Sequence record: MW349128.1
Direction: 5' to 3' (one strand)
Length of the DNA stretch: 64,000 bases
How positions within the stretch are numbered: the first letter of the stretch is position 1; each line of letters opens with the position of its first letter. Both the position numbers and the translations under genes were made by a program. Of the stretch, positions 1,795-42,039 are shown one piece after another. Under the pieces are notes generated by a model. It had not been told where the DNA came from. It saw only the letters and a list, made by a program, of their open reading frames with translations, and did no database searches.

Positions 1795-4530
1795 ATGAAA
1801 ATTAAACGATTAAAGTTAGTTAACTTTATAGGTATATATGCTGGGACAGGTCTTAAAGAAATTGAGATAGACTTCAGTAAGAGTAAAAATAATATGATAA
1901 TGCTACTTGGAAATAACGGATCTAGTAAGACTGTGATACTTTCACAACTAAGTCCGTATAGAACTTCTAATGATAATCGTAAGACAATTACGATTGAAGG
2001 AGAAAAAGGAGTTAAAGAAATCGATTATATTAAAGGTAATGATGTATATAAAATTAAACATCATTATGGTAAAAATAGTTCTCAGAATAAATCATTTATT
2101 AAAAAGAATGATGAAGAATTAAATGAAAATGGTGGCATTAAACTGTTTAATGAAATAGTTGATAATGAATTAGACGTATCACAAGAATATTTCACAGTAG
2201 GTAGATTAGGAGATAATGTATCTAACTTTATAGACTATACTACAGGTGATCGTAAAACATATATTAACAAATTTGTACCTAATATTGATAAGTATTTAGA
2301 AGCTTATAAAGTTGCTAATGAAAAGAAAAAGCTTATTGATAAAGATCTTAAGTCATTAAGATTTGATTTAGATAAATATAAAGAATTTGATGAAATTAAG
2401 AAAGAAAAAGAAGTACTAGAAAATTTAATTAATGAAATTCAAGATGAATTAGATAATGCTAATAAAGAAAAGACTTCTAATGAGACCAAATTAAATTCTA
2501 TTATGGAAGAAAAGTATAATGAAATTCATCCAACTCAATTAAAAGAAAATTTAATTAATGAACTTCATGAACTTGAAAATGAATTAGAAAAAGAAAGAAA
2601 GTTAAAAGAATCTAATGAAAATCTAAATAATTATACATTAGAATCTGCTAATGAAAAGAAAGAAAAAGTATCTTCTATACTTAATGAAGTTCATACAAAT
2701 TTAACATCAACTAAAAAGGATAAAGAATCTAATCAAGATAAATTAGATGATTTAATTAGTAGAAAATCTAAAATTGAATCTAGAATGAATGCTATTAAGT
2801 TCAATGAAGATTATGATGCTTCACAGGAAATTGATGAAATTCTTCAATCATATAAAGATGATCTAACTGATTTAGATAATGATATAGATGTTGCTAGAGG
2901 ATCCTATTTCAATAACTTTAATATTAAAATTAAAGATAATATTGAAGTTAATACACTTAATTTATATATAGATAACCTATTAAATAAAGTTAATAAATTC
3001 AAGAGTCTAGTTAATGATAATAAATTTAAATATAATGATATTCATGGAGATTTTGAAACTGAAATTAAATCTAATAAAGAAAAAATTTCTATGAACCTAA
3101 ATGAAGCTAATGAACTTAATACAAGTCTTAATCAAATTAAAGGTAAATCAGATTTACTTAAAATATTAGAACAAAAAGATCATGAACATTATAAAGAATG
3201 TGTATTTGTACCTTTAGTAGTTGATTTTAAAGATAATGAATATGATTCAATTGATAAATTGGAAACTAGAGTTAATGAACTTTATGAAGAAAATAATCAG
3301 TTAGAAAATGATAATGAACTTCTTTCTAATCATATCGATATATTAAATCAATTTAATTATATTAAAGAAGATGTCGATTCATTAAACGAATATTTAGGTT
3401 TTGATATTATTACTATGGATAATATTAAAGAGATATTTATTAATAATAGCTCATTTACTAATGAAGAAAATAGCTTGAAATCATTATCAGATAATGTTAA
3501 TGAAATTAGAACATCTGAACGCAATAGAGATGAATTATCTAAAGAATTGGAAAGAAAAAGATATGCGTTTAAAGAAGATCATTCTAATCAAAAATTAATG
3601 AATCAATATAACGAAGATAAAGCTGAATTAGAAAAGCAGATTGAAGAAGTTAAAAGTAATAAAGATAATATCTTAGAGAATCTTAATGAACTTAATGCAA
3701 AGAAAGATAAAGGACAAAATACTTTAGACATTATTAATGAATTTATTAATTTAACAGAAAAGTCTGATGAAATTAAATCTAACATTAAAGATAAACAATC
3801 TAATATTGATGAAGTTGATAAAGATTTAAATAATTTAAGTAGATTATATGAACTTAATCAACAATCAGATAGTAAGATTAATTCTATTAAAGATAATTTA
3901 ACTATGAAGAAAAATGATTTAGAATCTACTAAAGAAAAATACTTTACAGTAAATACGATTATTAATAAGATTGATGATATTGAGAAAGTATTATGGAAAT
4001 ATTCATTAGTAGTCGATTCATTGAATCCTAAAAAAGATTCTATACCATTAATATTCATTACTAATTACCTTAAAGATATTGCAGTAAGTACTAATGAACT
4101 TCTTTCAGTGGCGTACAATAATTCATTCAAGATTGATTTTGATTTAACTGACAAGGATTTCTTTATTAATGTTTATAAAGGTAATGGTACTGAATTACAA
4201 GACATTAAAGAAGCTTCTCAAGGGGAAACAGCTTTAACTAATATTAGTTTATCATTATCATTATTAAATAAAGTTTCACAAGATTATAATATTCTTTATC
4301 TAGATGAAATGGATGCAACATTAGACTCTAATAATCGTAGAAGATTTGTTGATGTTATTGATAAGCAAATTGAATTAATGGGATTAGAACAAGTATTCTT
4401 AATTAGTCATAATGATGAATTTTATAGTTCTGATATTGATTTAATTTTGCTTAAAGGATATGAAAATAAGATTGATATTAATGATGAAGAAATGATGCAA
4501 GGTAAAAATGTATTGTTTAAATTAAATTAA
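1795..4530 (+). CDS. sbcC: SbcC/Rad50-like SMC-family ATPase
   Basis: Walker A GNNGSSKT, long coiled coil, signature SQGE, Walker B ILYLDEMD, D-loop ATLD, H-loop LISHN. Confidence 0.92.
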   Translation: MKIKRLKLVNFIGIYAGTGLKEIEIDFSKSKNNMIMLLGNNGSSKTVILSQLSPYRTSNDNRKTITIEGEKGVKEIDYIKGNDVYKIKHHYGKNSSQNKSFIKKNDEELNENGGIKLFNEIVDNELDVSQEYFTVGRLGDNVSNFIDYTTGDRKTYINKFVPNIDKYLEAYKVANEKKKLIDKDLKSLRFDLDKYKEFDEIKKEKEVLENLINEIQDELDNANKEKTSNETKLNSIMEEKYNEIHPTQLKENLINELHELENELEKERKLKESNENLNNYTLESANEKKEKVSSILNEVHTNLTSTKKDKESNQDKLDDLISRKSKIESRMNAIKFNEDYDASQEIDEILQSYKDDLTDLDNDIDVARGSYFNNFNIKIKDNIEVNTLNLYIDNLLNKVNKFKSLVNDNKFKYNDIHGDFETEIKSNKEKISMNLNEANELNTSLNQIKGKSDLLKILEQKDHEHYKECVFVPLVVDFKDNEYDSIDKLETRVNELYEENNQLENDNELLSNHIDILNQFNYIKEDVDSLNEYLGFDIITMDNIKEIFINNSSFTNEENSLKSLSDNVNEIRTSERNRDELSKELERKRYAFKEDHSNQKLMNQYNEDKAELEKQIEEVKSNKDNILENLNELNAKKDKGQNTLDIINEFINLTEKSDEIKSNIKDKQSNIDEVDKDLNNLSRLYELNQQSDSKINSIKDNLTMKKNDLESTKEKYFTVNTIINKIDDIEKVLWKYSLVVDSLNPKKDSIPLIFITNYLKDIAVSTNELLSVAYNNSFKIDFDLTDKDFFINVYKGNGTELQDIKEASQGETALTNISLSLSLLNKVSQDYNILYLDEMDATLDSNNRRRFVDVIDKQIELMGLEQVFLISHNDEFYSSDIDLILLKGYENKIDINDEEMMQGKNVLFKLN

Positions 4531-33458: not shown

Positions 33459-36400
33459 TTAAATCATATCTTTTACTTTACGTTTTAATTCTATTAAAGC
33501 TTTATTTGTGAATAGCATCATATAAATATCAACTGTCATACGAGAGACAATACTTAATGGAGAGAATACAGCTTCGATTTCCTCATCAGGTCTATATTCC
33601 GCATAAGGAGATTCATTTGGAGGAGTTACATCAGCAACTACAGTTTTACAAGCTCCATAGAAACTAATTTTATCTCCAACACTCATATCATCTTCATACT
33701 CAGTGAAGATTTCAATAAGAACTCCATCAACTTTTTCTCCTTTAATTTTCTCTGTATTAATTTTATCAACTGCAGCGATATCTACATCAATACCAGGTAA
33801 AGTTTCTTTATTATTTTTAATTCCAGATTTATACTCTTTATATTTATCATTTGATTTTTTAATGTAATTATTAACTAATTTAGCTAAACTATCAGTCATA
33901 TTTTCAATATCATCATTATAATAAATATTAATCTTTTTAATATTACCTGTATATTTACTTCTAACAGCTCGGTTAGCTATATCTTGAATATCTTGTTCAA
34001 ATTCACTACCAATTTTATCTAATAAAGAACCAATACCTTCTTCATCGAATGAAGTTTCAAATATCATTAAAGGATCTCCTGTACGTACTTTCTGACCTTC
34101 TTTAACTATATATTGAATATTTGTGTTTGATGGAATATTTACTGTTTTCTTCATAGTAACTTTAGTAGACATTGCTTCAGACATACTACTAGAAATAATA
34201 GAACTATCTTCATAAGTCATTTATATTAGCTATTATATTTTTATAATAGATTAGACTATATCAAATTCATTAGTATTAATGAATAATCATATTTAGTCGT
34301 TGAACTCTATAAATGTAGAGATGCTGATTAATTTAATATTTCTCAGCAATTAATAATTTTTTGACATTACATTACTATAATGAAAGGCATTTATAATACC
34401 ATATGAGCTAGCTACAGATACTTTAGATAATTTACCTGAAGTGAATTGAATATCATTATTTTTACCAGATCCAGCAAAGAAATTATTATTTTTAGCAAGT
34501 ATTTGACCTTTATTAAAAGTGTCATCTACATTAAATTGTGGATCAAGTTTATTAGATTGATAAAAACCTGAGTTAGAGTTTTTGGCTAATTTTTCAGATA
34601 TATCAACAATATCTTTTTCACCATTGATATATTCCACTGTCATTAAACCAGTTTTCTCGTTAATTTTTAATACTTTACCATCTTGTTTAGCTTTAAAAGC
34701 AAATGTATCTGATAATTGATAAGCTAAAGATTTATCAACACCAGATCCAACTAATGGTTTACTATTAGTTTTTGTTGGAATTACGTGCTTGGCTTGAGTC
34801 AGATTATCTTAATACACTTTGTTTATTGTGTATTAGTTCTTAATGAACTTCTTTAAAATAAATTAAAGCTGAGACTATATCAAATACCATTTAGGTATAA
34901 TCTTATTTAGTCGTTGAACAATTTGATTGATGCTGATTAATTTAATTATTATTTTCTCAGCAATTAAAGATTTTTCTATTATTATATTACTATAATAAAG
35001 GGCATTCATATACCAGTCATTCCTATACGTGGACTATCTGCATGTTTTGAGCTGAATGGGTTGAGCAATTCTAATGGAGTGTATAGAGATGTATCACTCG
35101 CATCTTTCTTACCGCCATCTGTATAACCTCTAGTGGATTTAATTAGTGAATCATATGAAAGCTGTCTGACCACTCCTCAAATATCTTCAATAATGGGCGT
35201 TAACCATTACCAGTTCTCTTATGAACTTCTTTAGGATTTCCCTAAAAGTTGAGACTATATCAAATACCATCAATTAATGGTATAGTTCTTTTTCCACTCA
35301 CTTGAGTGTACTCTACTTCATCAAATATATCTTTGAAATAATTTTTATTAAAATCAGTGTAATAATCTTTTTCATTTAATATTTTTTTATTTCTTATAAT
35401 GAGTATATTTGATTTTTCGATAGTCGTTGAACTATTTAAAATATCATGAAAGTTATCTAAAAAGAAATTGATATTATTTTTATTTATACGAATTAAAGTT
35501 AAATTATTTTTTAAACAAAAGTCATTTTTTATGTGGTCTTTTAGTGCATTTTCTTTGACATTTTCTAATTTTTGATATTTAGAATTATTTCTATACTTAA
35601 AATGTTGAACCCCATCAAATTCCAAAAGTATATTTTCGTTATTTAATGTAAATAAGAAATCAAATCTAAATCTATTAGTATTTTTAGAATAATAAAAATC
35701 ATTAAAAGACTTTTCTCTTTCATAATTTATATTATTTTCATCAAAGAATTTTCTAATTGATATTTCACCATTAGACTTAATAGCACAAATAGGACATCTG
35801 TGCCCTGCACTTACAAAACTGTTTGCACGCATCTCAAATACTTTACCACACTTATGATGTAATATTTTCATTTTAGTGAATAGATTAGTATATGTTTGTC
35901 CATCAATAAGAGAGTATTCATTTTTGCCTAAATATTCTATTTCTTTTTTAAAACTTTCAATTGTTCTTTTTTTTATATTTAGAACATTTAGGACACTTCT
36001 TATAATATAACAAATTATTTGGAGTGGATTTAAATGTTTCATTGCATAGTGTATGTCTAAAATTTATTTTTATTTTACTCCCTTTATATCTTTCTAAAGG
36101 TATAAACAAATCATAGATATTCTCATTTTTTAAACTATAAATAAAATCTTCATGATTTTTATTTATACCGCCTACACATTTGACACATTTATTTTTTCCT
36201 TCAAACATTTGTTTAGGTTTTCGTTTAAATTTAAAACCACAATTATGTTTTAAATTTATTTCAGTATCATAGTCTACGTATTCTTCATAAAAAATTTCGT
36301 ATTCTTTAAATTTCTCATAATTATCATTTACTTTCTTTTTAAAACTTTCTTTATCAATTTTTCTCACATTATCACCCCAGATTATAATAAAATTATGTTA

Positions 36401-39400
36401 AAGGGGAATGTGATAAAAATAATATTTTAAACAGCTGCTGATTGTCCAATCTTAATGATTTTTAAGCATATCACGCTTACTGTTGCCAGTTACGTTGTAG
36501 CTCATTAAGCTCTAAGGATCTCCCAGCAATTAAGAACTTTTCGACATTACATCACTGTAATGAAGGGCAGTATTATTTACCTTGTTTGAGTCAGGCGTGC
36601 TTATTCCTAATACACCTTGCATACTTTCACTGTATGAACGAATATCAGGTTCATATGATTGTTCATTATTACGTCCAGCAGGACCTTTAAATGTAACAGA
36701 AGTCATCTTATCAATCTCTAAAGATGGATTAAGATCAGATACTTCATCTACAGTAGGTTGTTCCATTATAGTTTTGATTAATTGGTCTTGCTTAACAGAA
36801 ATATTCTTAGGATTCTTATTATTGTAAGAGTCTGAATATTCTTTATATGCGTTTGCAATCATTTTATATATTAAAGCATTAACTTGTTCTGGACCACGTA
36901 CACGATATATTCCCATGTCATTGTGTTCTCTAGCAGTTACATCTTCTAGCATAGTATTAGCTAAGAGTAATAATTCCACCATAGTTTCCGGTAATTTTAA
37001 ATCTCTTAATACATCTTCTGTAATTGGATCCATTGCTAAATCTAATGCATTTTTAATTCCTTTACCAACATTACGACTATAGAATTTATCATTAAAGTAT
37101 TCTAAGTAAGGTGTCTCACTATTAAATTCTTCAAAGTCATATTGTGAAGTAGGAATAGTATTTAATCCTGATAATAATAAATCATATCTTAATTTATCTG
37201 TTGAATAAATAAGATAACCATCTTGGAATTTAATTTTATTCTTCTTATCTTTAATAGTTATTCTTTCATTTTCTTTAACAAACTTATAATCAACTTCATA
37301 GAGATCAAGAATACTAGTTAAACCTTTATAGAAACCTAATAACACTATTGTAGGGATTAATTTATTAGTAATTTTAACACGAGAGAATGCCATTGTTTTA
37401 CTAGCTTGAATATTTTTACTGAATTTTTTATCTATTAGACTAAAATCAATATTATCTTCAAGTTGTTCAATAATATAATCTGTGATATTAATATTCATAG
37501 ATTCTATATTACTTTTAGTAGCTTTAAAAATAATAGATTCTGTAGTATTTGATAATATTAATTTAGATTTGTTTGAATTATAACCGATAGGATAGTATTT
37601 ATCTTTATCGTAATCAATCTCACTTAAAGTTTTACTTTCTGAAATAACTTTTTTAAGATTTCTTTGATTAAAATCAATTATCAAATCATCTTTAGAGAAT
37701 CTTAATATATTTTTAGATAAATTATTATACAACACAGAAGTTAAATATTCTTTATTAATTAAAGATGAATTACCTTTTTGAATACTAATATCATTTTTAT
37801 CTTTAATGTATTCTAGTACTTGTTTATCTTCAATAACTTTTTTAAGCCATTCAGTTTCAGAATTTTCTTTGCTACCAAATTTTTCAATGATGAATTTATT
37901 ATAGTTAGTTGTAATCCAAACTGTATCCGGTCTATATTTAACAATAGGATACATCATTAATTGTTTAGTTAGTACCTTTTTACCACCATTTAATTTTAAA
38001 TATTTACCATCAATAATTTTAGGTACATCAAATTTTACATTATGATTAATCCCATCAGGACTCTTAAATTGAACTTTTACAGTATTCTTTAATGATTGAG
38101 AATCTGAATTATCTTCTACATTCATTTTGCTAATGAATACAGGTATTTCTTCATTATCATTAAAACTCTTCATAATATTTACAAAGTCTTTATTAAATGT
38201 CTTTTTCATATAAGATAAGTCAAAATCATTCGAAGATACATTGTTAATTGCTTCATCATTAATACTATTAACATTTTCATTAATTTCTCTATCAATAACA
38301 TTATCTTCAGAAAAACTAAAATCTTCTAATTTTTCAAGATATTCATCTTGATTTTTAGCTAATGATAATATCTTTTTAGAATTCTTTAATGCAGTGTCTC
38401 CAATATATGATTTATTTTTAATATCTCTTTTAATTGATTTAAATGAATCATTCTTATCAAGTACATCATTATATAATGTATCTTCATCAATATCAATAAG
38501 ATCATTATTATCATTTAATTCTTTTTCAATTATCATTGCAATATTGTATTCATCATTAATATCCATATCAATATTATCATTAGATTTAATATATCTTAAT
38601 GTATCATCTATTTTCTTAGATATTTTTTCCATCTTAGAATCTTCAATGTCTTGATTAATTTCATCTTTATCATTATCTTGTAATTCAACTGGATCAATAT
38701 CTTTAACATTATTAAATGATTTCTTTTTAATAGTTGAATCTATAGCTTCTGTATTATCATCATCTTCAACATTAGAAATTTCATCTGTATCCATTTGTTG
38801 AGTATTTAAATCAATAGCTCTTCTTAATCTTTGTCTTAATCTATTATTCAATTTATTATAATCTTTAAAATCAAATTTAAACATTATACCGTTCTCAATA
38901 GAAACAAATAAAGCTACTACATTTTGATTTTCTTTGTGAGGTAATTCTTCCTGATTCTTAATCATCATAAATAAACTTGACATAAAATCTTTTGTATTTG
39001 GTCTAATAGCTTCTTGAGAAGATTTATTGTATCCATCTACATTAATTACATATAATAAATTTTCATATTCTTCTGGATTATTTAAATTATTATAAGTATT
39101 TTTAATTGAATCTAATACAGTTTTAAAATTCTTAGTCATTAACGATTTATTTTCAAGATTGATAAATTTACTTGAATCAACTATATAATTTCTACCTTTA
39201 AATAATTTCTCATTTCTTTCTACTCTATAAGATTTAATTGATTTACTTTTAATTTCTTGTTGATAATCTGAAATATTAGTAATTAATCTTGATTTTCTAT
39301 TTGTTGTTCTATATATTCTAGGAGTATAAATATTCTTGAAATTTTGATAATATAATATACCACTATTTAAGAATTCTATAAATGAATTTTCTTTAAAACC

Positions 39401-39517
39401 TTTATAAATTATTAATTGGTTTTTCTTTTGATCCTTAATATTTTCATCTATAGCTTTAATCTTATATCCTGAAATTGAATAGAATTTTAAATTCTTTAAT
39501 CTATTAAGATACTTCAC
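33459..39517 (-). CDS. rpoB: RNA polymerase beta-like subunit, probably virion RNAP; four exons, 1421 aa
   Basis: Exons 39517-36579, 35177-35012, 34799-34398 and 34217-33459 join in frame: STPDSNKV|GVVRQL, SPRIGMTG|TQAKH, SSYG|TYEDSSII, GDKISFYGACK. Late promoter upstream supports virion RNAP (inference). Confidence 0.92.
34218..34397 (-). mobile_element. ORF-less group I mini-intron C (180 nt) in rpoB
   Basis: GGT|ATTATAAATGCC P1; TTGCTGAG..AATCAGCA; GTTCAACGACTA; TGATATAGTCT; terminal G34218; removal restores YG|TYEDS. Confidence 0.9.
34800..35011 (-). mobile_element. ORF-less group I mini-intron B (212 nt) in rpoB
   Basis: GGT|ATATGAATGCC P1; same core motifs; terminal G34800; removal restores GMTG|TQAKH. 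Confidence 0.9.
35260..36042 (-). CDS. Intron-encoded endonuclease, C-terminal part (Zn module plus Vsr-like/EDxHD-type domain)
   Basis: HHKCGKVF..RCPIC; FRFDF..EFDGVQHF..DHIKNDFC; paralogue of 6522..7283. Confidence 0.8.
   Translation of the reverse strand: MKHLNPLQIICYIIRSVLNVLNIKKRTIESFKKEIEYLGKNEYSLIDGQTYTNLFTKMKILHHKCGKVFEMRANSFVSAGHRCPICAIKSNGEISIRKFFDENNINYEREKSFNDFYYSKNTNRFRFDFLFTLNNENILLEFDGVQHFKYRNNSKYQKLENVKENALKDHIKNDFCLKNNLTLIRINKNNINFFLDNFHDILNSSTTIEKSNILIIRNKKILNEKDYYTDFNKNYFKDIFDEVEYTQVSGKRTIPLIDGI
35957..36367 (-). CDS. Intron-encoded endonuclease, N-terminal part (two Zn modules), out of frame with the C-terminal part
   Basis: HNCGFKF..KCVKC and HTLCNETF..KCPKC; ends just after an A8 run. 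Confidence 0.75.
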   Translation of the reverse strand: MRKIDKESFKKKVNDNYEKFKEYEIFYEEYVDYDTEINLKHNCGFKFKRKPKQMFEGKNKCVKCVGGINKNHEDFIYSLKNENIYDLFIPLERYKGSKIKINFRHTLCNETFKSTPNNLLYYKKCPKCSKYKKKNN

Positions 39518-39833
39518 TTATTATTCAATTCCTTTCATTTAATAAATTTTATATATGTACTTGTTTTCTTTATCTTTTTTATGTAATTTAAGGAGAAATA
39601 ATTTATTAGATTTTGATATAATCAAAATCTAAATATACCCCCTCTAATATTATATTTTTTATATATTAAAATATTTTATATTTTAATATATTATAATAAT
39701 TATATTATTATATAAATATAATATTCCGGAGGTTTTCAAATTTTTTACGAGATATTTTTATAAATTACAAAAATATAAAATTGATGATAACATTCAAATA
39801 TTACAAATAATATATGAAAGAAGTGAAACTAAA

Positions 39834-41387
39834 TTGGTTAATATGATTTATGATAAAAAAGATTTATCTGAGAAAGAAGTATCAACTTTATTAAGTATAA
39901 AAAAAGAAGATATTACTCTTGATAAACTTAAAGAATTATTTGCATTTAGACAAAATACACAACCAATGTTTAACCCTAGCGATAGATTTAAACTTAAAAA
40001 AGATTTAGTTTATAATAGTAAAGATGAGAGAACAACAGTTGGAAGATATATATTTAATAAATTTATATTAGACAATAAAATAGGACCTATTATAGGATAT
40101 ATGAATAAAGATATGGGAGGATCAGGTGTAGGAAATCTACAATCTGAACTATCTAGTTTATTACTTAATGATGTTATTACAACTAAAGATATGAATATGT
40201 ATATTGATAAACTTCAATGGCTCGGTTTCTCCATAGCAGGATTTATTAATTCTAGCTTAACAACTACAATGATGGTTGCTCCCGATAAAGTTAAACAAAA
40301 GAAAGAAGAATTACTAGAGAAATATGGTAAAGCATTAAATACTCCTGGTGAAGAATTGAATGCTATTAGTGCTATTGAAAAAGAATTAATTAAGTTAAGT
40401 AAGGAAGAATTAGAAGGTTTAGCAGATCTTGATATTTATGATAGTGGATCAAGAGGTAGTTTTGGAAATAACTTCAAGTTAACAGCTCTTATTCGTGGAG
40501 CAAATAAAAACTTTGCTGATCCTAGTAAAATACGTATTGCTAAGAGTTCTTTAGCTGATGGAATTGATCCAGAAGAATTATATATGTTTGGTGATATTAT
40601 GACAGCTGGTTCAGCTGGACGTGCTTTAGGTATATGAATGCCCTTTATTATAGTAATATAATAATAGAAAAATTATTAATTGCTGAGAAGATATAAACTT
40701 AATCAGCATCAATCAGAATGATTGTTCAACGACTAAATATAATTAAACTCATAAAGAGTTTTTGATATAGTCTGATCTATATTAAATTAATATAGATTAA
40801 CATAAATGACTCAAGAAGGTGGGTAAATTAGATGCTCACAATAAATTCTATTAATTGCTAGAATGTTAAAACTAACTAGCATCAACTTTATTAAGTTGTT
40901 CAACGACTAAATATAGAAATGATTAAATTCATAAGATATAGTCTAATCTATAATAAAATATAGATAATAAAATGATCAAGCTAAAAAACTTATGTCCGCT
41001 TTCCAAACAACTGTATTAGATAAACAAGGTTCTGATTGTAGAACAAAACATACATTAAAATTAACATTAACTAAAGATAATGCGAGTCTTTTATTATATA
41101 GATATTTTGAAGATACTTCAGGAAGAAAAGGTCAATTAATACTATTAACGCCTGAAAATGTGGATGAACACATGGGTAAAGTATTGAACTTCAGAAGTCC
41201 TATGTATTGTGCAAGTGAAGATATTTGTAGTAAATGTGCAGGAGAACTCCCTTACAAACTAGGTATAGAAAATATTGGACTATTGGTTAACCAAGTGGCT
41301 CAAGCAATTGTAACAAGCTCCATGAAGTCTTTCCATGATATGACAATTAAACAAAATGAAATAGATATCGAAGATTATATTTATTAA
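39834..41387 (+). CDS. rpoC: RNA polymerase beta' C-terminal-like subunit, probably virion RNAP; three exons, 408 aa
   Basis: Exons 39834-40631, 40809-40824 and 40975-41387 give GRALG|TQEGG(Y)|QAKKL (bridge helix; cf. TANSGYLTRRL); SGSRGS, DC, FRSPMYC..ICSKCAG. Confidence 0.92.
40632..40808 (+). mobile_element. ORF-less group I mini-intron D (177 nt)
   Basis: GGT|ATATGAATGCC; TTGCTGAG..AATCAGCA; GTTCAACGACTA; TGATATAGTCT; P9 ATCTATAT/ATATAGAT; terminal G40808. Confidence 0.9.
40825..40974 (+). mobile_element. ORF-less group I mini-intron E (150 nt)
   Basis: P1 GTGGGT/GCTCAC; P3 TTCTAT/ATAGAA; P4 TGCTAG/CTAGCA; P6 CAAC/GTTG; P7 GACTA/TAGTC; P8 ATGA/TCAT; P9; terminal G40974; no P2. Confidence 0.88.
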
Positions 41388-41434
41388 AAGCGTAATATAT
41401 TGAAATATAAACATATATTATAATAATGAAGAAA

Positions 41435-41504
41435 GTTTATCTAGCTCAGTTGGTAGAGCAATGATTTTCATCATGTGTCCGGGGTTCGATCCCTCGGATA
41501 AGCT
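41435..41504 (+). tRNA. tRNA-like gene with a shrunken anticodon loop (pseudo-tRNA)
   Basis: Acceptor GTTTATC/GATAAGC, D arm GCTC/GAGC, T arm CGGGG-TTCGATC-CCTCG; anticodon arm is only 14 nt (ATGAT-TTTC-ATCAT). Confidence 0.8.
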
Positions 41505-41857
41505 TTTTTTGGTCTAAAATTCTTATTTATTAAAAAATTTTATTTAAAAATATTAATTAACTATATAGTATAAATCTATAATGATCCTCGTCAAATTATT
41601 ATAGATTTTTTTTTTAGTTTTTGATTTAACTAAAAAATATAATAGATTAAATTCTATTATAACTTACTTTGTCGTTTGTTGTTGCTTTAAAAATGTTCCT
41701 TTGATTTCTTGTTTCTATTTTTAATATGTCATGGTTTTAAATAGAAATCCATACGCCTCCTTACGTATAATTAAAAATGAATAGATATTATTATATATTT
41801 ATTTACTTAAAAGAGTGCATAGATGATAAATGTACTCTTTTATTTTTTTTTTATTAA

Positions 41858-41929
41858 TGCTCTATAATTCAATGGTAGAATGCTTGACTGTTAATCAAGA
41901 GGTTGTTTGTTCGAATCAAACTAGAGCAG
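41858..41929 (+). tRNA. trnN: tRNA-Asn(GUU)
   Basis: Full cloverleaf: TGCTCTA/TAGAGCA; CTTGA-CTGTTAA-TCAAG; GTTTG-TTCGAAT-CAAAC; CCA not encoded. Confidence 0.93.
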
Positions 41930-41936
41930 TTTCTAT

Positions 41937-42039
41937 GTTCCTATAGCTCAATGGTCAGAGCGTACGGATTTCATGAATTATACCTGGATAGGATAATTTA
42001 TGGATCTGTAGGTTATGAGTTCGAATCTCATTAGGAACA
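41937..42039 (+). tRNA. tRNA-like gene whose anticodon arm is an extended hairpin of about 21 bp
   Basis: Acceptor GTTCCTA/TAGGAAC, D arm GCTC/GAGC, T arm ATGAG-TTCGAAT-CTCAT; 38 nt lie between the TACGG/CTGTA stem halves. Confidence 0.8.

Follow-up and report, generated by a model that had tools for sequence, protein, structure and literature searches.

Two non-homologous genes of a Staphylococcus jumbo phage are interrupted at the same 10-nucleotide (nt) sequence by introns that begin identically, and this raises the question of how one kind of intron came to occupy both places. The DNA analyzed here (the window, 64,000 nt) corresponds with 100% identity to record positions 124001-188000 of Staphylococcus phage Machias (MW349128.1), an AR9-like jumbo phage of 274 kb. 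Within it, intron B lies in the virion RNA polymerase (RNAP) beta C-terminal gene (rpoB) and intron D in the virion RNAP beta-prime mid-domain gene (rpoC). A sequence-only reading of the window had attributed this arrangement to ectopic transposition by guide-directed reverse splicing. Results of the present analysis give good support to the view that a single intron lineage has given rise to paralogous copies, B and D, at two non-homologous, guide-matched sites, and an ectopic colonisation event is, on sequence evidence, very probable. The best explanation as a whole combines this paralogy with movement from D to B, an RNA route and later exchange at the DNA level, and we assign it a probability of roughly 0.5; the direction and the RNA route are the parts that we infer. 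The features concerned are as follows.

33459-39517, minus strand: virion RNAP beta C-terminal gene (rpoB); exons 39517-36579, 35177-35012, 34799-34398 and 34217-33459
39843-41387, plus strand: virion RNAP beta-prime mid-domain gene (rpoC); exons 39843-40631, 40809-40824 and 40975-41387
35011-34800, minus strand: intron B, 212 nt, in rpoB at nt 3093 of the S6 gene; P1, P2 and a P3-P8 core, without endonuclease gene
40632-40808, plus strand: intron D, 177 nt, in the bridge helix of rpoC at nt 798 of the S6 gene, without endonuclease gene
35012-35014, minus strand: 5' exon end of B, GGT, pairing with guide GCC (P1), with U.G at the splice site
34793-34799, minus strand: 3' exon start of B, ACTCAAG, paired with the L1 guide at +1 and +3 to +5 (P10)
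40629-40631, plus strand: 5' exon end of D, GGT (P1)

The beta and beta-prime identities come from the GenBank annotation, and matches to bacterial beta and beta-prime chains, weak but in the right places, agree with it. Intron boundaries were obtained by spliced alignment of ten related phages against the intron-free S6 genes, followed by curation of the junctions. Phages S6, SA1 and DC4, in which both RNAP genes are uninterrupted, served as intron-free references. For several introns a strict U...G rule did not yield the boundaries automatically, and these introns were curated by comparison with the S6 protein. Removal of the inserts yields an unbroken alignment to the intron-free homologues across conserved RNAP motifs.

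Introns B and D share their start and their target

Intron positions 1-42 are exactly identical between B and D, as had been claimed from the sequence alone, and this identity is located in the variable P1-P2 region, outside the invariant core. Together with the preceding GGT, the 42 nt form a 45-nt perfect inverted repeat in the genome that extends to 75 nt at 91%. The earlier description of the two introns as near-identical holds for this 5' end and not for their full length, over which they are 72% identical and mosaic: identity is 100% in P1-P2, 62% in P3-P6, 59% in P8 and 35% in the 3' domain, which is enlarged in B and forms three hairpins. In phage LY01, the 3' domains of B and D are 93% identical.

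Both introns split GGT|ACTCAAG, where the bar marks the insertion site. Beyond these 10 nt the exon flanks show no relationship (2/12 matches upstream, 0/12 downstream), and the two sites are non-homologous, one being GMTG|TQAK in beta, within the motif that aligns with EHDDANRxLMGxNMQRQ, and the other ALG|TQEG in the beta-prime bridge helix. Both introns are too short for an endonuclease gene, their only open reading frame (ORF) being one of 44 amino acids in B. The shared non-homologous target and the lack of an endonuclease were therefore described correctly by the sequence-only reading.

Among the 528 pairs that can be formed from 33 curated Machias introns, B and D have the longest contiguous target identity (10 nt) and also the highest identity over their first 50 nt (0.96). 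The 10-mer GGTACTCAAG is expected in 0.12 copies per genome, and an uninterrupted copy was not found in the Machias genome. Because B and D are the top pair on both measures and the 10-mer is expected only 0.12 times, chance is excluded as the cause of their target sharing.

A second pair of introns, again of one guide class, also occupies nearly identical targets in unrelated genes. These are gyrB_1 (GCCGAT|GATGATGG, L014:43496-43672) and nvBpN_2 (GCCGAT|TATGATGG, L011:2987-3166), the latter being the second intron of the non-virion beta-prime N-terminal gene; L011-L015 denote the rest of the Machias genome. Their targets have 13/14 bases in common (14/15 in the spliced context), and position +1 covaries with the guide. 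The introns terL_1 and vBpN_3 also have GAGAGT|G in common.

Predicted group I structure and guide pairing

No intron family was detected by Rfam in the window, either at the gathering score or at E values up to 10. We read this as low sensitivity of the model for AT-rich introns of 150-210 nt, because structural evidence supports a group I assignment. For the covariation analysis, 32 short members were aligned and their pairs scored on a hand-drawn P2-P9 structure that includes the P3/P7 pseudoknot. Cells drawn as paired could pair in 85.9% of cases, compared with 71.1% in shuffles and 30-50% when partners were slid, and 31 pairs had changes on both sides. P3 was 96.8% paired with compensatory changes in 4/5 of its pairs, P7 was invariant, and many compensatory changes were present in P3, P6, P8 and P9; one P3 pair reads T-A in D, C-G in B and A-T in LY01 B. 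Folding of D and B recovered P1 (GGUAU/AUGCC), P2, P4-P6, P7/P8 and P9, with z scores of -4.3 for D and -2.8 for B. A terminal G is present in 33/33 curated introns and a U at -1 in 31/33. Taken together, the structural evidence indicates that B, D and their family are predicted group I self-splicing introns.

The exceptions to U at -1 were observed in vBpN_2, which has a C opposite guide A and splits the ADFDG|D catalytic motif, and in terL_3, which has an apparent G at an ambiguous boundary (the exceptions lie at L013:16342-16491 and L012:9684-9854).

Three further introns share the two RNAP genes with B and D, and their features are listed below.

36578-35178, minus strand: intron A, 1401 nt, in rpoB at S6 nt 2927; GGT/GCC subfamily, AAGGT|AGGAGTGG; two ORFs
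35260-36042 and 35957-36367 (overlapping), minus strand: ORFs of intron A, labelled in GenBank as homing endonuclease and hypothetical protein
34397-34218, minus strand: intron C, 180 nt, in rpoB at S6 nt 3495; GGT/GCC subfamily, GGT|ACTTATG
40825-40974, plus strand: intron E, 150 nt, in rpoC at S6 nt 814; lacks P2; P1 is GTGGGT/GCTCAC
40809-40824, plus strand: micro-exon between D and E, 16 nt, ACTCAAGAAGGTGGGT

Within the micro-exon ACTCAAGAAGGTGGGT, the first 7 nt are the 3' target of D and the last 6 nt form P1 of E. A Pfam search of the intron A ORFs returned no endonuclease domain, the sole match being a weak treble-clef zinc finger, so that the endonuclease of intron A is putative and follows the GenBank label. 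The 5' part of intron A (36436-36531) matches 95-nt stretches at 83-88% in unrelated 85-93-kb Staphylococcus epidermidis phages and in an Alicyclobacillus phage.

In both B and D, P1 joins GGU|AU with AUGCC, and the last exon U forms a U.G wobble. The B/D loop AUAUGAAU pairs with A.UCA (P10), while the loop of C, AUUAUAAAU, pairs with ACUUAUGA. The guide change in C matches the change in its 3' exon and is therefore a compensatory change in P10, which agrees with the covariation at GGT|ACTTATG that had been pointed out from the sequence alone. Guide pairing was also evaluated over all 33 introns. The mean pairing with the own 5' exon was 4.73 bp against 3.35 bp for permuted exons, and the mean pairing with the own 3' exon was 2.70 against 1.54; both values lay above all 3000 permutations, so that the clade does show the target bias whose absence would have spoken against guide-directed spread. 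For each of five guide classes (GGT/GCC, CGAT/GTCG, GAGT/GCTC, GGGT/GCTYA and GGAT/GTCC), several sites are occupied, all with the corresponding exon end. The similarity of intron heads correlates weakly with that of their targets (Mantel r = 0.16, p = 0.01).

Filled and empty alleles

Mapping of presence and absence across the ten phages demonstrated that three of them (Machias, AH12 and LY01) have both B and D and that the remaining seven have neither. Phage PB50, whose copies of these genes share about 97% identity with those of Machias and AH12, has perfect targets with both sites empty. PB50 retains intron E 16 nt from its empty D site and the intron at rpoB nt 3069 (B3069) 24 nt from its empty B site. 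When the D-bearing allele of Machias is compared with the D-free allele of PB50, the flanks are identical from -121 to +107; when the B-bearing allele of AH12 is compared with the B-free allele of PB50, they are identical from -46 to +113. Neither comparison offers nearby convertible markers. The flanks of intron A carry a dense substitution cluster from -23 to +9.

That PB50 once had B and D and lost them by way of cDNA copied from spliced mRNA was considered and is unlikely, E and B3069 having survived 16 and 24 nt away. Such a loss would be expected to have taken the neighbouring introns too, and therefore a clean gain of B and D is the simpler reading.

Comparison of the target sites suggests a direction. 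The rpoC site reads GGTACTCAAG in 8/10 phages, intron-free ones included; the two others, MarsHill and Madawaska, differ in having GGA at -1. Alleles without an intron at the rpoB site show GGTACCCAAG, GGAACTCAGG or GGTACTCAGG, the variation falling on synonymous positions, and the exact 10-mer is present at the empty site of SA1 and PB50 as well as in the three intron-bearing alleles. Because the rpoC 10-mer is widespread and the rpoB 10-mer is reached only via synonymous codon choices in the Machias clade and in SA1, D is probably the older site, and the rpoB site may have become a target through synonymous drift.

The rpoB site belongs to a crowded region. Three insertion sites, at S6 nt 3069, 3086 and 3093 (window about 34800-35040), fall within 25 nt in the beta EHDDANR..MQRQ motif, and each is filled in a different subset of the ten phages. 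The intron at nt 3086 bears an ORF in PALS_2 and MarsHill. The guide of the nt 3069 intron covaries with its exon, GCCGAT occurring with GTCGGC and GCGGAT with GTTCGC.

Exchange of modules at the DNA level

Several members of the family share whole modules. D and the GyrB intron, which lies 66 kb from it, have P3-P6 segments that are 91% identical, and in LY01 the P3-P6 segments of D and A are 88% identical. The 3' domain of Machias B (P8 3' strand, P7' and first 3' hairpin; 34800-34890) resembles that of A (35178-35270), with 26 nt at 96%, so that B appears chimeric, its head being of the D type and its tail of the A type. All family members have long invariant core blocks in common, which are obvious crossover points.

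Exchange also extends to the exons. LY01 belongs to the S6 clade, and its exons are S6-like except for short Machias-type tracts adjoining introns C, B and E (Machias-type states at -12 to +6 of C, at -4, -1 and +6 of B, and at -5 and +5 of E). Since several of the bases concerned do not pair with the guide, the most plausible reading of these tracts, each about 10-20 nt long, is short co-conversion from intron-bearing donors.

In the cores of B and D, 7 informative positions are site-specific and 3 are phage-specific, so that the cores group by site. The idea that B and D evolved in concert inside each phage was examined and set aside, since it accounts for only one 3-site P2 patch against the 7 site-specific positions. 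Module exchange across the family is better supported than such within-phage concerted evolution.

Route of the ectopic step

Reverse splicing is the leading, unproven candidate for the route from one gene to the other, and we give it slightly less than an even chance. By this route, excised D RNA would reverse-splice into the rpoB message at the P1/P10-matched junction, the RNA form of the target being GGUACUCAAG. Guide GCC would pair with exon GGU (P1, with the U.G wobble) and the loop AUAUGAAU upstream of the guide would pair with A.UCA. A reverse transcriptase supplied in trans would then copy the reverse-spliced product to DNA, and phage homologous recombination would fix the DNA copy. 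Later, the copies would act as ordinary DNA repeats that swap modules at invariant core blocks, and homologous recombination, with very short co-conversion tracts, would carry them from one co-infecting phage to another.

Several findings favour reverse splicing. The boundaries are precise, exon similarity is confined to -3..+7, filled and empty alleles are otherwise identical, and every copy lies in a gene in the sense direction. A reverse transcriptase, which the sequence-only reading had proposed to look for elsewhere in the phage genome, is present as CPT_Machias_216 (RVT_1 domain, E = 7e-21), and a UvsX-like recombinase is annotated in Machias. The part of the earlier claim that concerned spread to a second site is accordingly well supported, whereas its choice of reverse splicing is favoured by these observations without being settled by them.

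A number of points weigh against the combined explanation and its RNA step in particular. The 10-nt identity stops where the coding identity of G-T-Q plus the first base of A/E stops; the two ends coincide, and the length of the recognised target is therefore not readable from the 10-mer, of which P1 and P10 together pair 7 bases (-3..-1, +1 and +3..+5). Selection for splicing from an essential gene imposes a P1/P10 match on any insertion route. The P1 formed with the exon measures just 3 bp, and GGTA.TCA is found at 22 sites that hold no intron. The reverse transcriptase is a member of an array-associated family that was described only recently and has a repeat locus of its own; S6, SA1, DC4 and PALS_2, which have few or no such introns, encode it too, and its presence therefore does not tie it specifically to the introns. 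The signatures of mobility that are directly visible, namely module exchange and LY01 co-conversion, are at the DNA level, and the A at +6 tracks intron presence though it is unpaired in P10. Finally, with B and D sharing only 72% of their full sequence, the event is not recent or has been overwritten.

The strongest rival is ectopic homing at the DNA level, in which a trans-acting nuclease would cut at or near one of the two sites and repair would proceed from the other copy via short flanks, only precise and splice-competent products surviving in essential genes. Candidate nucleases are free-standing HNH/homing endonucleases, of which at least ten genes are annotated in Machias, or the enzyme of a neighbouring intron, such as the rpoB nt 3086 intron of PALS_2 and MarsHill, whose site forms part of the three-site hot spot at nt 3069-3093. 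Illegitimate repair with limited exon homology is a described transposition route (PMC3984707). Co-conversion-like tracts flank A, B3069 and C, the +6 A and -4 T that track intron B in LY01 are unpaired with the guide, and the target shared by gyrB_1 and nvBpN_2 exceeds the bases that P1 and P10 can pair. Set against these observations, the available homology of 3 nt + 7 nt is very short for templated repair, donor exon sequence was not carried along, and the D+/D- and B+/B- alleles have identical flanks. In addition, the D site is without an endonuclease-bearing intron in all 55 phage records. We consider this route rather unlikely.

A different rival dispenses with transposition between the two genes. 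Unrelated resident introns would have gained the P1-P2 head (in LY01 also the P9 tail) by gene conversion, and the common target would reflect convergent codon use for G-T-Q. Modules are clearly exchanged between D and gyrB, between LY01 D and LY01 A, and between B and A; the cores of B and D group by site rather than by phage (7 vs 3 positions); and the AT-rich genome favours the codons GGT, ACT and CAA. Each intron would still have needed one entry with a guide matching the same 10-mer, and two independent insertions at the same 10 nt are very improbable at 0.12 expected copies per genome. The conversion would also have to end precisely at the exon boundary, and B and D are the extreme pair on both measures, which together make the proposal improbable.

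That the inserts are not introns, or that the common sequence is a family consensus, is hardly credible: the absence of any Rfam group I match even at E up to 10 and the long invariant core blocks throughout the family would fit such an artefact, but removal of the inserts restores the alignment across RNAP motifs, covariation supports the fold, and the 42-nt identity lies in the variable P1-P2 region and not in the invariant core.

Returning to reverse splicing, a stronger version of it would have Machias-like phages host an actively transposing family of endonuclease-free mini-introns with a complete RNA route into a uracil-DNA genome. We regard this version as quite doubtful, a little less so than the head-conversion proposal. 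If true, it would be the first natural system for demonstrating RNA-mediated mobility of group I introns and would give the orphan phage reverse transcriptase a role.

The intron family in Machias and its wider occurrence

A census of the window and the rest of the Machias genome (L011-L015), with the intron-poor S6 genome as reference, identified 33 curated group I introns of one broad family, which together occupy 15.5 kb or 5.6% of the genome. Most are 142-212 nt long, and most lack an ORF or endonuclease gene. The members in the window lie at 34218-36578 and 40632-40974. Host genes encode both RNA polymerases, DNA polymerase, TerL, NrdE, GyrB, the prohead protease and two structural proteins, and all copies are sense-oriented within them.

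A distant BLAST search with D matched 30 places in Machias, 30 in AH12, 32 in LY01, 20 in PB50, 11 in Madawaska and 8 in MarsHill, with no match in S6, DC4, SA1 or PALS_2; the intron content of PALS_2 is limited to an unrelated intron with an endonuclease gene. Among 50,697 phage records, the B/D head occurs in Machias, AH12, LY01 and, in C only, PB50. An exact search for the head in IMG/VR and JGI metagenome contigs returned no match. Of 55 records, the only four with an interrupted beta-prime mid gene are those of Machias, AH12, LY01 and PB50.

The pair of core R/S motifs (GTTCAACGACTAAAT ... ATATAGTCT) was observed together with a short P8 in at least 119 viral contigs of IMG/VR, including 200-400-kb phage contigs and giant-virus bins, in a search that is too unspecific as it stands. 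Small introns of the Machias type may be widely missed.

Relation to known systems

The Staphylococcus phages Twort and K, and the RNAP genes of Bacillus phage AR9, provide a close parallel, with multiple related group I introns; they are cited by Korn et al. (10.1101/2020.12.14.422802). As in Machias, several self-splicing introns reside in polymerase, terminase and nucleotide-metabolism genes, and their positions vary between relatives. Machias differs in having 33 introns, mostly of 142-212 nt and without an endonuclease gene, a number that to our knowledge is far above that described for Twort, K or AR9. We also know of no description of target sharing between non-homologous genes for the introns of those phages. 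Domain shuffling between the td, nrdB and sunY introns of phage T4 was reportedly described by Bryk and Belfort in 1990. The Machias-group exchange resembles it in that recombination at the conserved core between copies in one phage genome yields mosaic introns; it differs in being a natural polymorphism, among about 30 copies and between phages, rather than a set of laboratory recombinants.

It has long been asked how group I introns reach new sites, and for nuclear rDNA introns such spread has been inferred to occur by reverse splicing (Bhattacharya et al. 2005, PMC1299323; PMC3984707). A review of bacterial group I introns describes the reverse-splicing pathway as lacking direct evidence, with the rDNA introns as its best circumstantial case (PMC3984707). 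The Machias introns resemble them as related introns at non-homologous guide-matched sites, without an endonuclease gene and with circumstantial evidence. Unlike the rDNA introns, they have protein-coding genes of a DNA phage as hosts, match a full 10-mer that includes the P10 partner, are accompanied by a phage-encoded reverse transcriptase, and have empty and filled alleles in cultivable relatives.

Homing and collaborative homing (PMC3984707) share with the present case insertion in conserved catalytic motifs and flank co-conversion, observed here at A, C and B3069. B and D differ from such introns in that they encode no protein, their sites are non-homologous and no cutting enzyme is known. 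Group II introns undergo ectopic retrotransposition in which only the IBS motifs are conserved (Tourasse and Kolsto 2008, PMC2504315). There, confinement of target similarity to RNA-pairing bases is taken as a signature of RNA-guided insertion, a logic that would apply in the same way to B and D; group II introns are another ribozyme class, bring their own reverse transcriptase and insert into DNA, and neither of the latter holds for B and D. Intron-disrupted genes in these phages were described by Korn et al. (10.1101/2020.12.14.422802), who predicted exons from protein alignments only and noted the reverse transcriptase; the introns were not classified and their sites not compared.

For the question of new sites, this phage group offers protein-coding targets, about 30 comparable guide/target copies, at least two pairs at matching targets in unrelated genes, and a phage-encoded reverse transcriptase. 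It also offers cultivable close relatives set apart only by B and D, the perfect targets being empty in PB50 and filled in AH12 and Machias, and the route is testable by ordinary co-infection crosses. The value of the system extends beyond the B/D pair to 33 guide-matched mini-introns, module exchange, micro-exons and natural filled/empty alleles, in a class of small introns that the Rfam group I model misses.

Gene models, micro-exons and other observations

The census corrects gene models through micro-exons of 6-20 nt and missed exons. In GenBank rpoC is a 2-piece join, compared with three exons here, and the 16-nt micro-exon appears to have been missed. The model of the non-virion beta-prime N-terminal gene (CDS_002; L011:2799-3430) ends within an intron and misses two introns and a downstream exon. 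At L014:40360-40400, the gyrB model is without its first exon, located upstream of an intron that carries a TnpB gene. Thus the GenBank models of CDS_002, gyrB and rpoC all look incomplete.

Micro-exons between tandem introns recur in the genome. Besides the 16 nt of rpoC (window 40809-40824), they measure 11 nt in the prohead protease gene (L012:1932-1942), 18 nt in the virion beta N-terminal gene (L015:6592-6609) and 20 nt in the non-virion beta C-terminal gene (L015:23798-23817). The shortest, the 6-nt GCCGAT (L011:2981-2986) in the DxDGD motif of non-virion beta-prime, is wholly used by P1 of the downstream intron.

Downstream of rpoC, a tRNA-like gene at window 41434-41505 has an abnormal anticodon loop by ARAGORN and is a pseudo-tRNA in GenBank. 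A tRNA-Asn at 41858-41929 is likewise labelled as a pseudo-tRNA in GenBank, and a 103-nt Rfam tRNA match at 41937-42039 was not reported by ARAGORN.

Introns of about 1650 nt combine a group I ribozyme start with a TnpB gene (OrfB_IS605 and Cas12f1-like TNB domains). They were located at L012:28316-29957 (minus strand), L014:18026-19678 and L014:40400-42052 in Machias and at L005:5364-7013 in LY01, in each case after ...GAT in protein-coding genes. From this arrangement, the TnpB-bearing introns look like an IStron in a phage.

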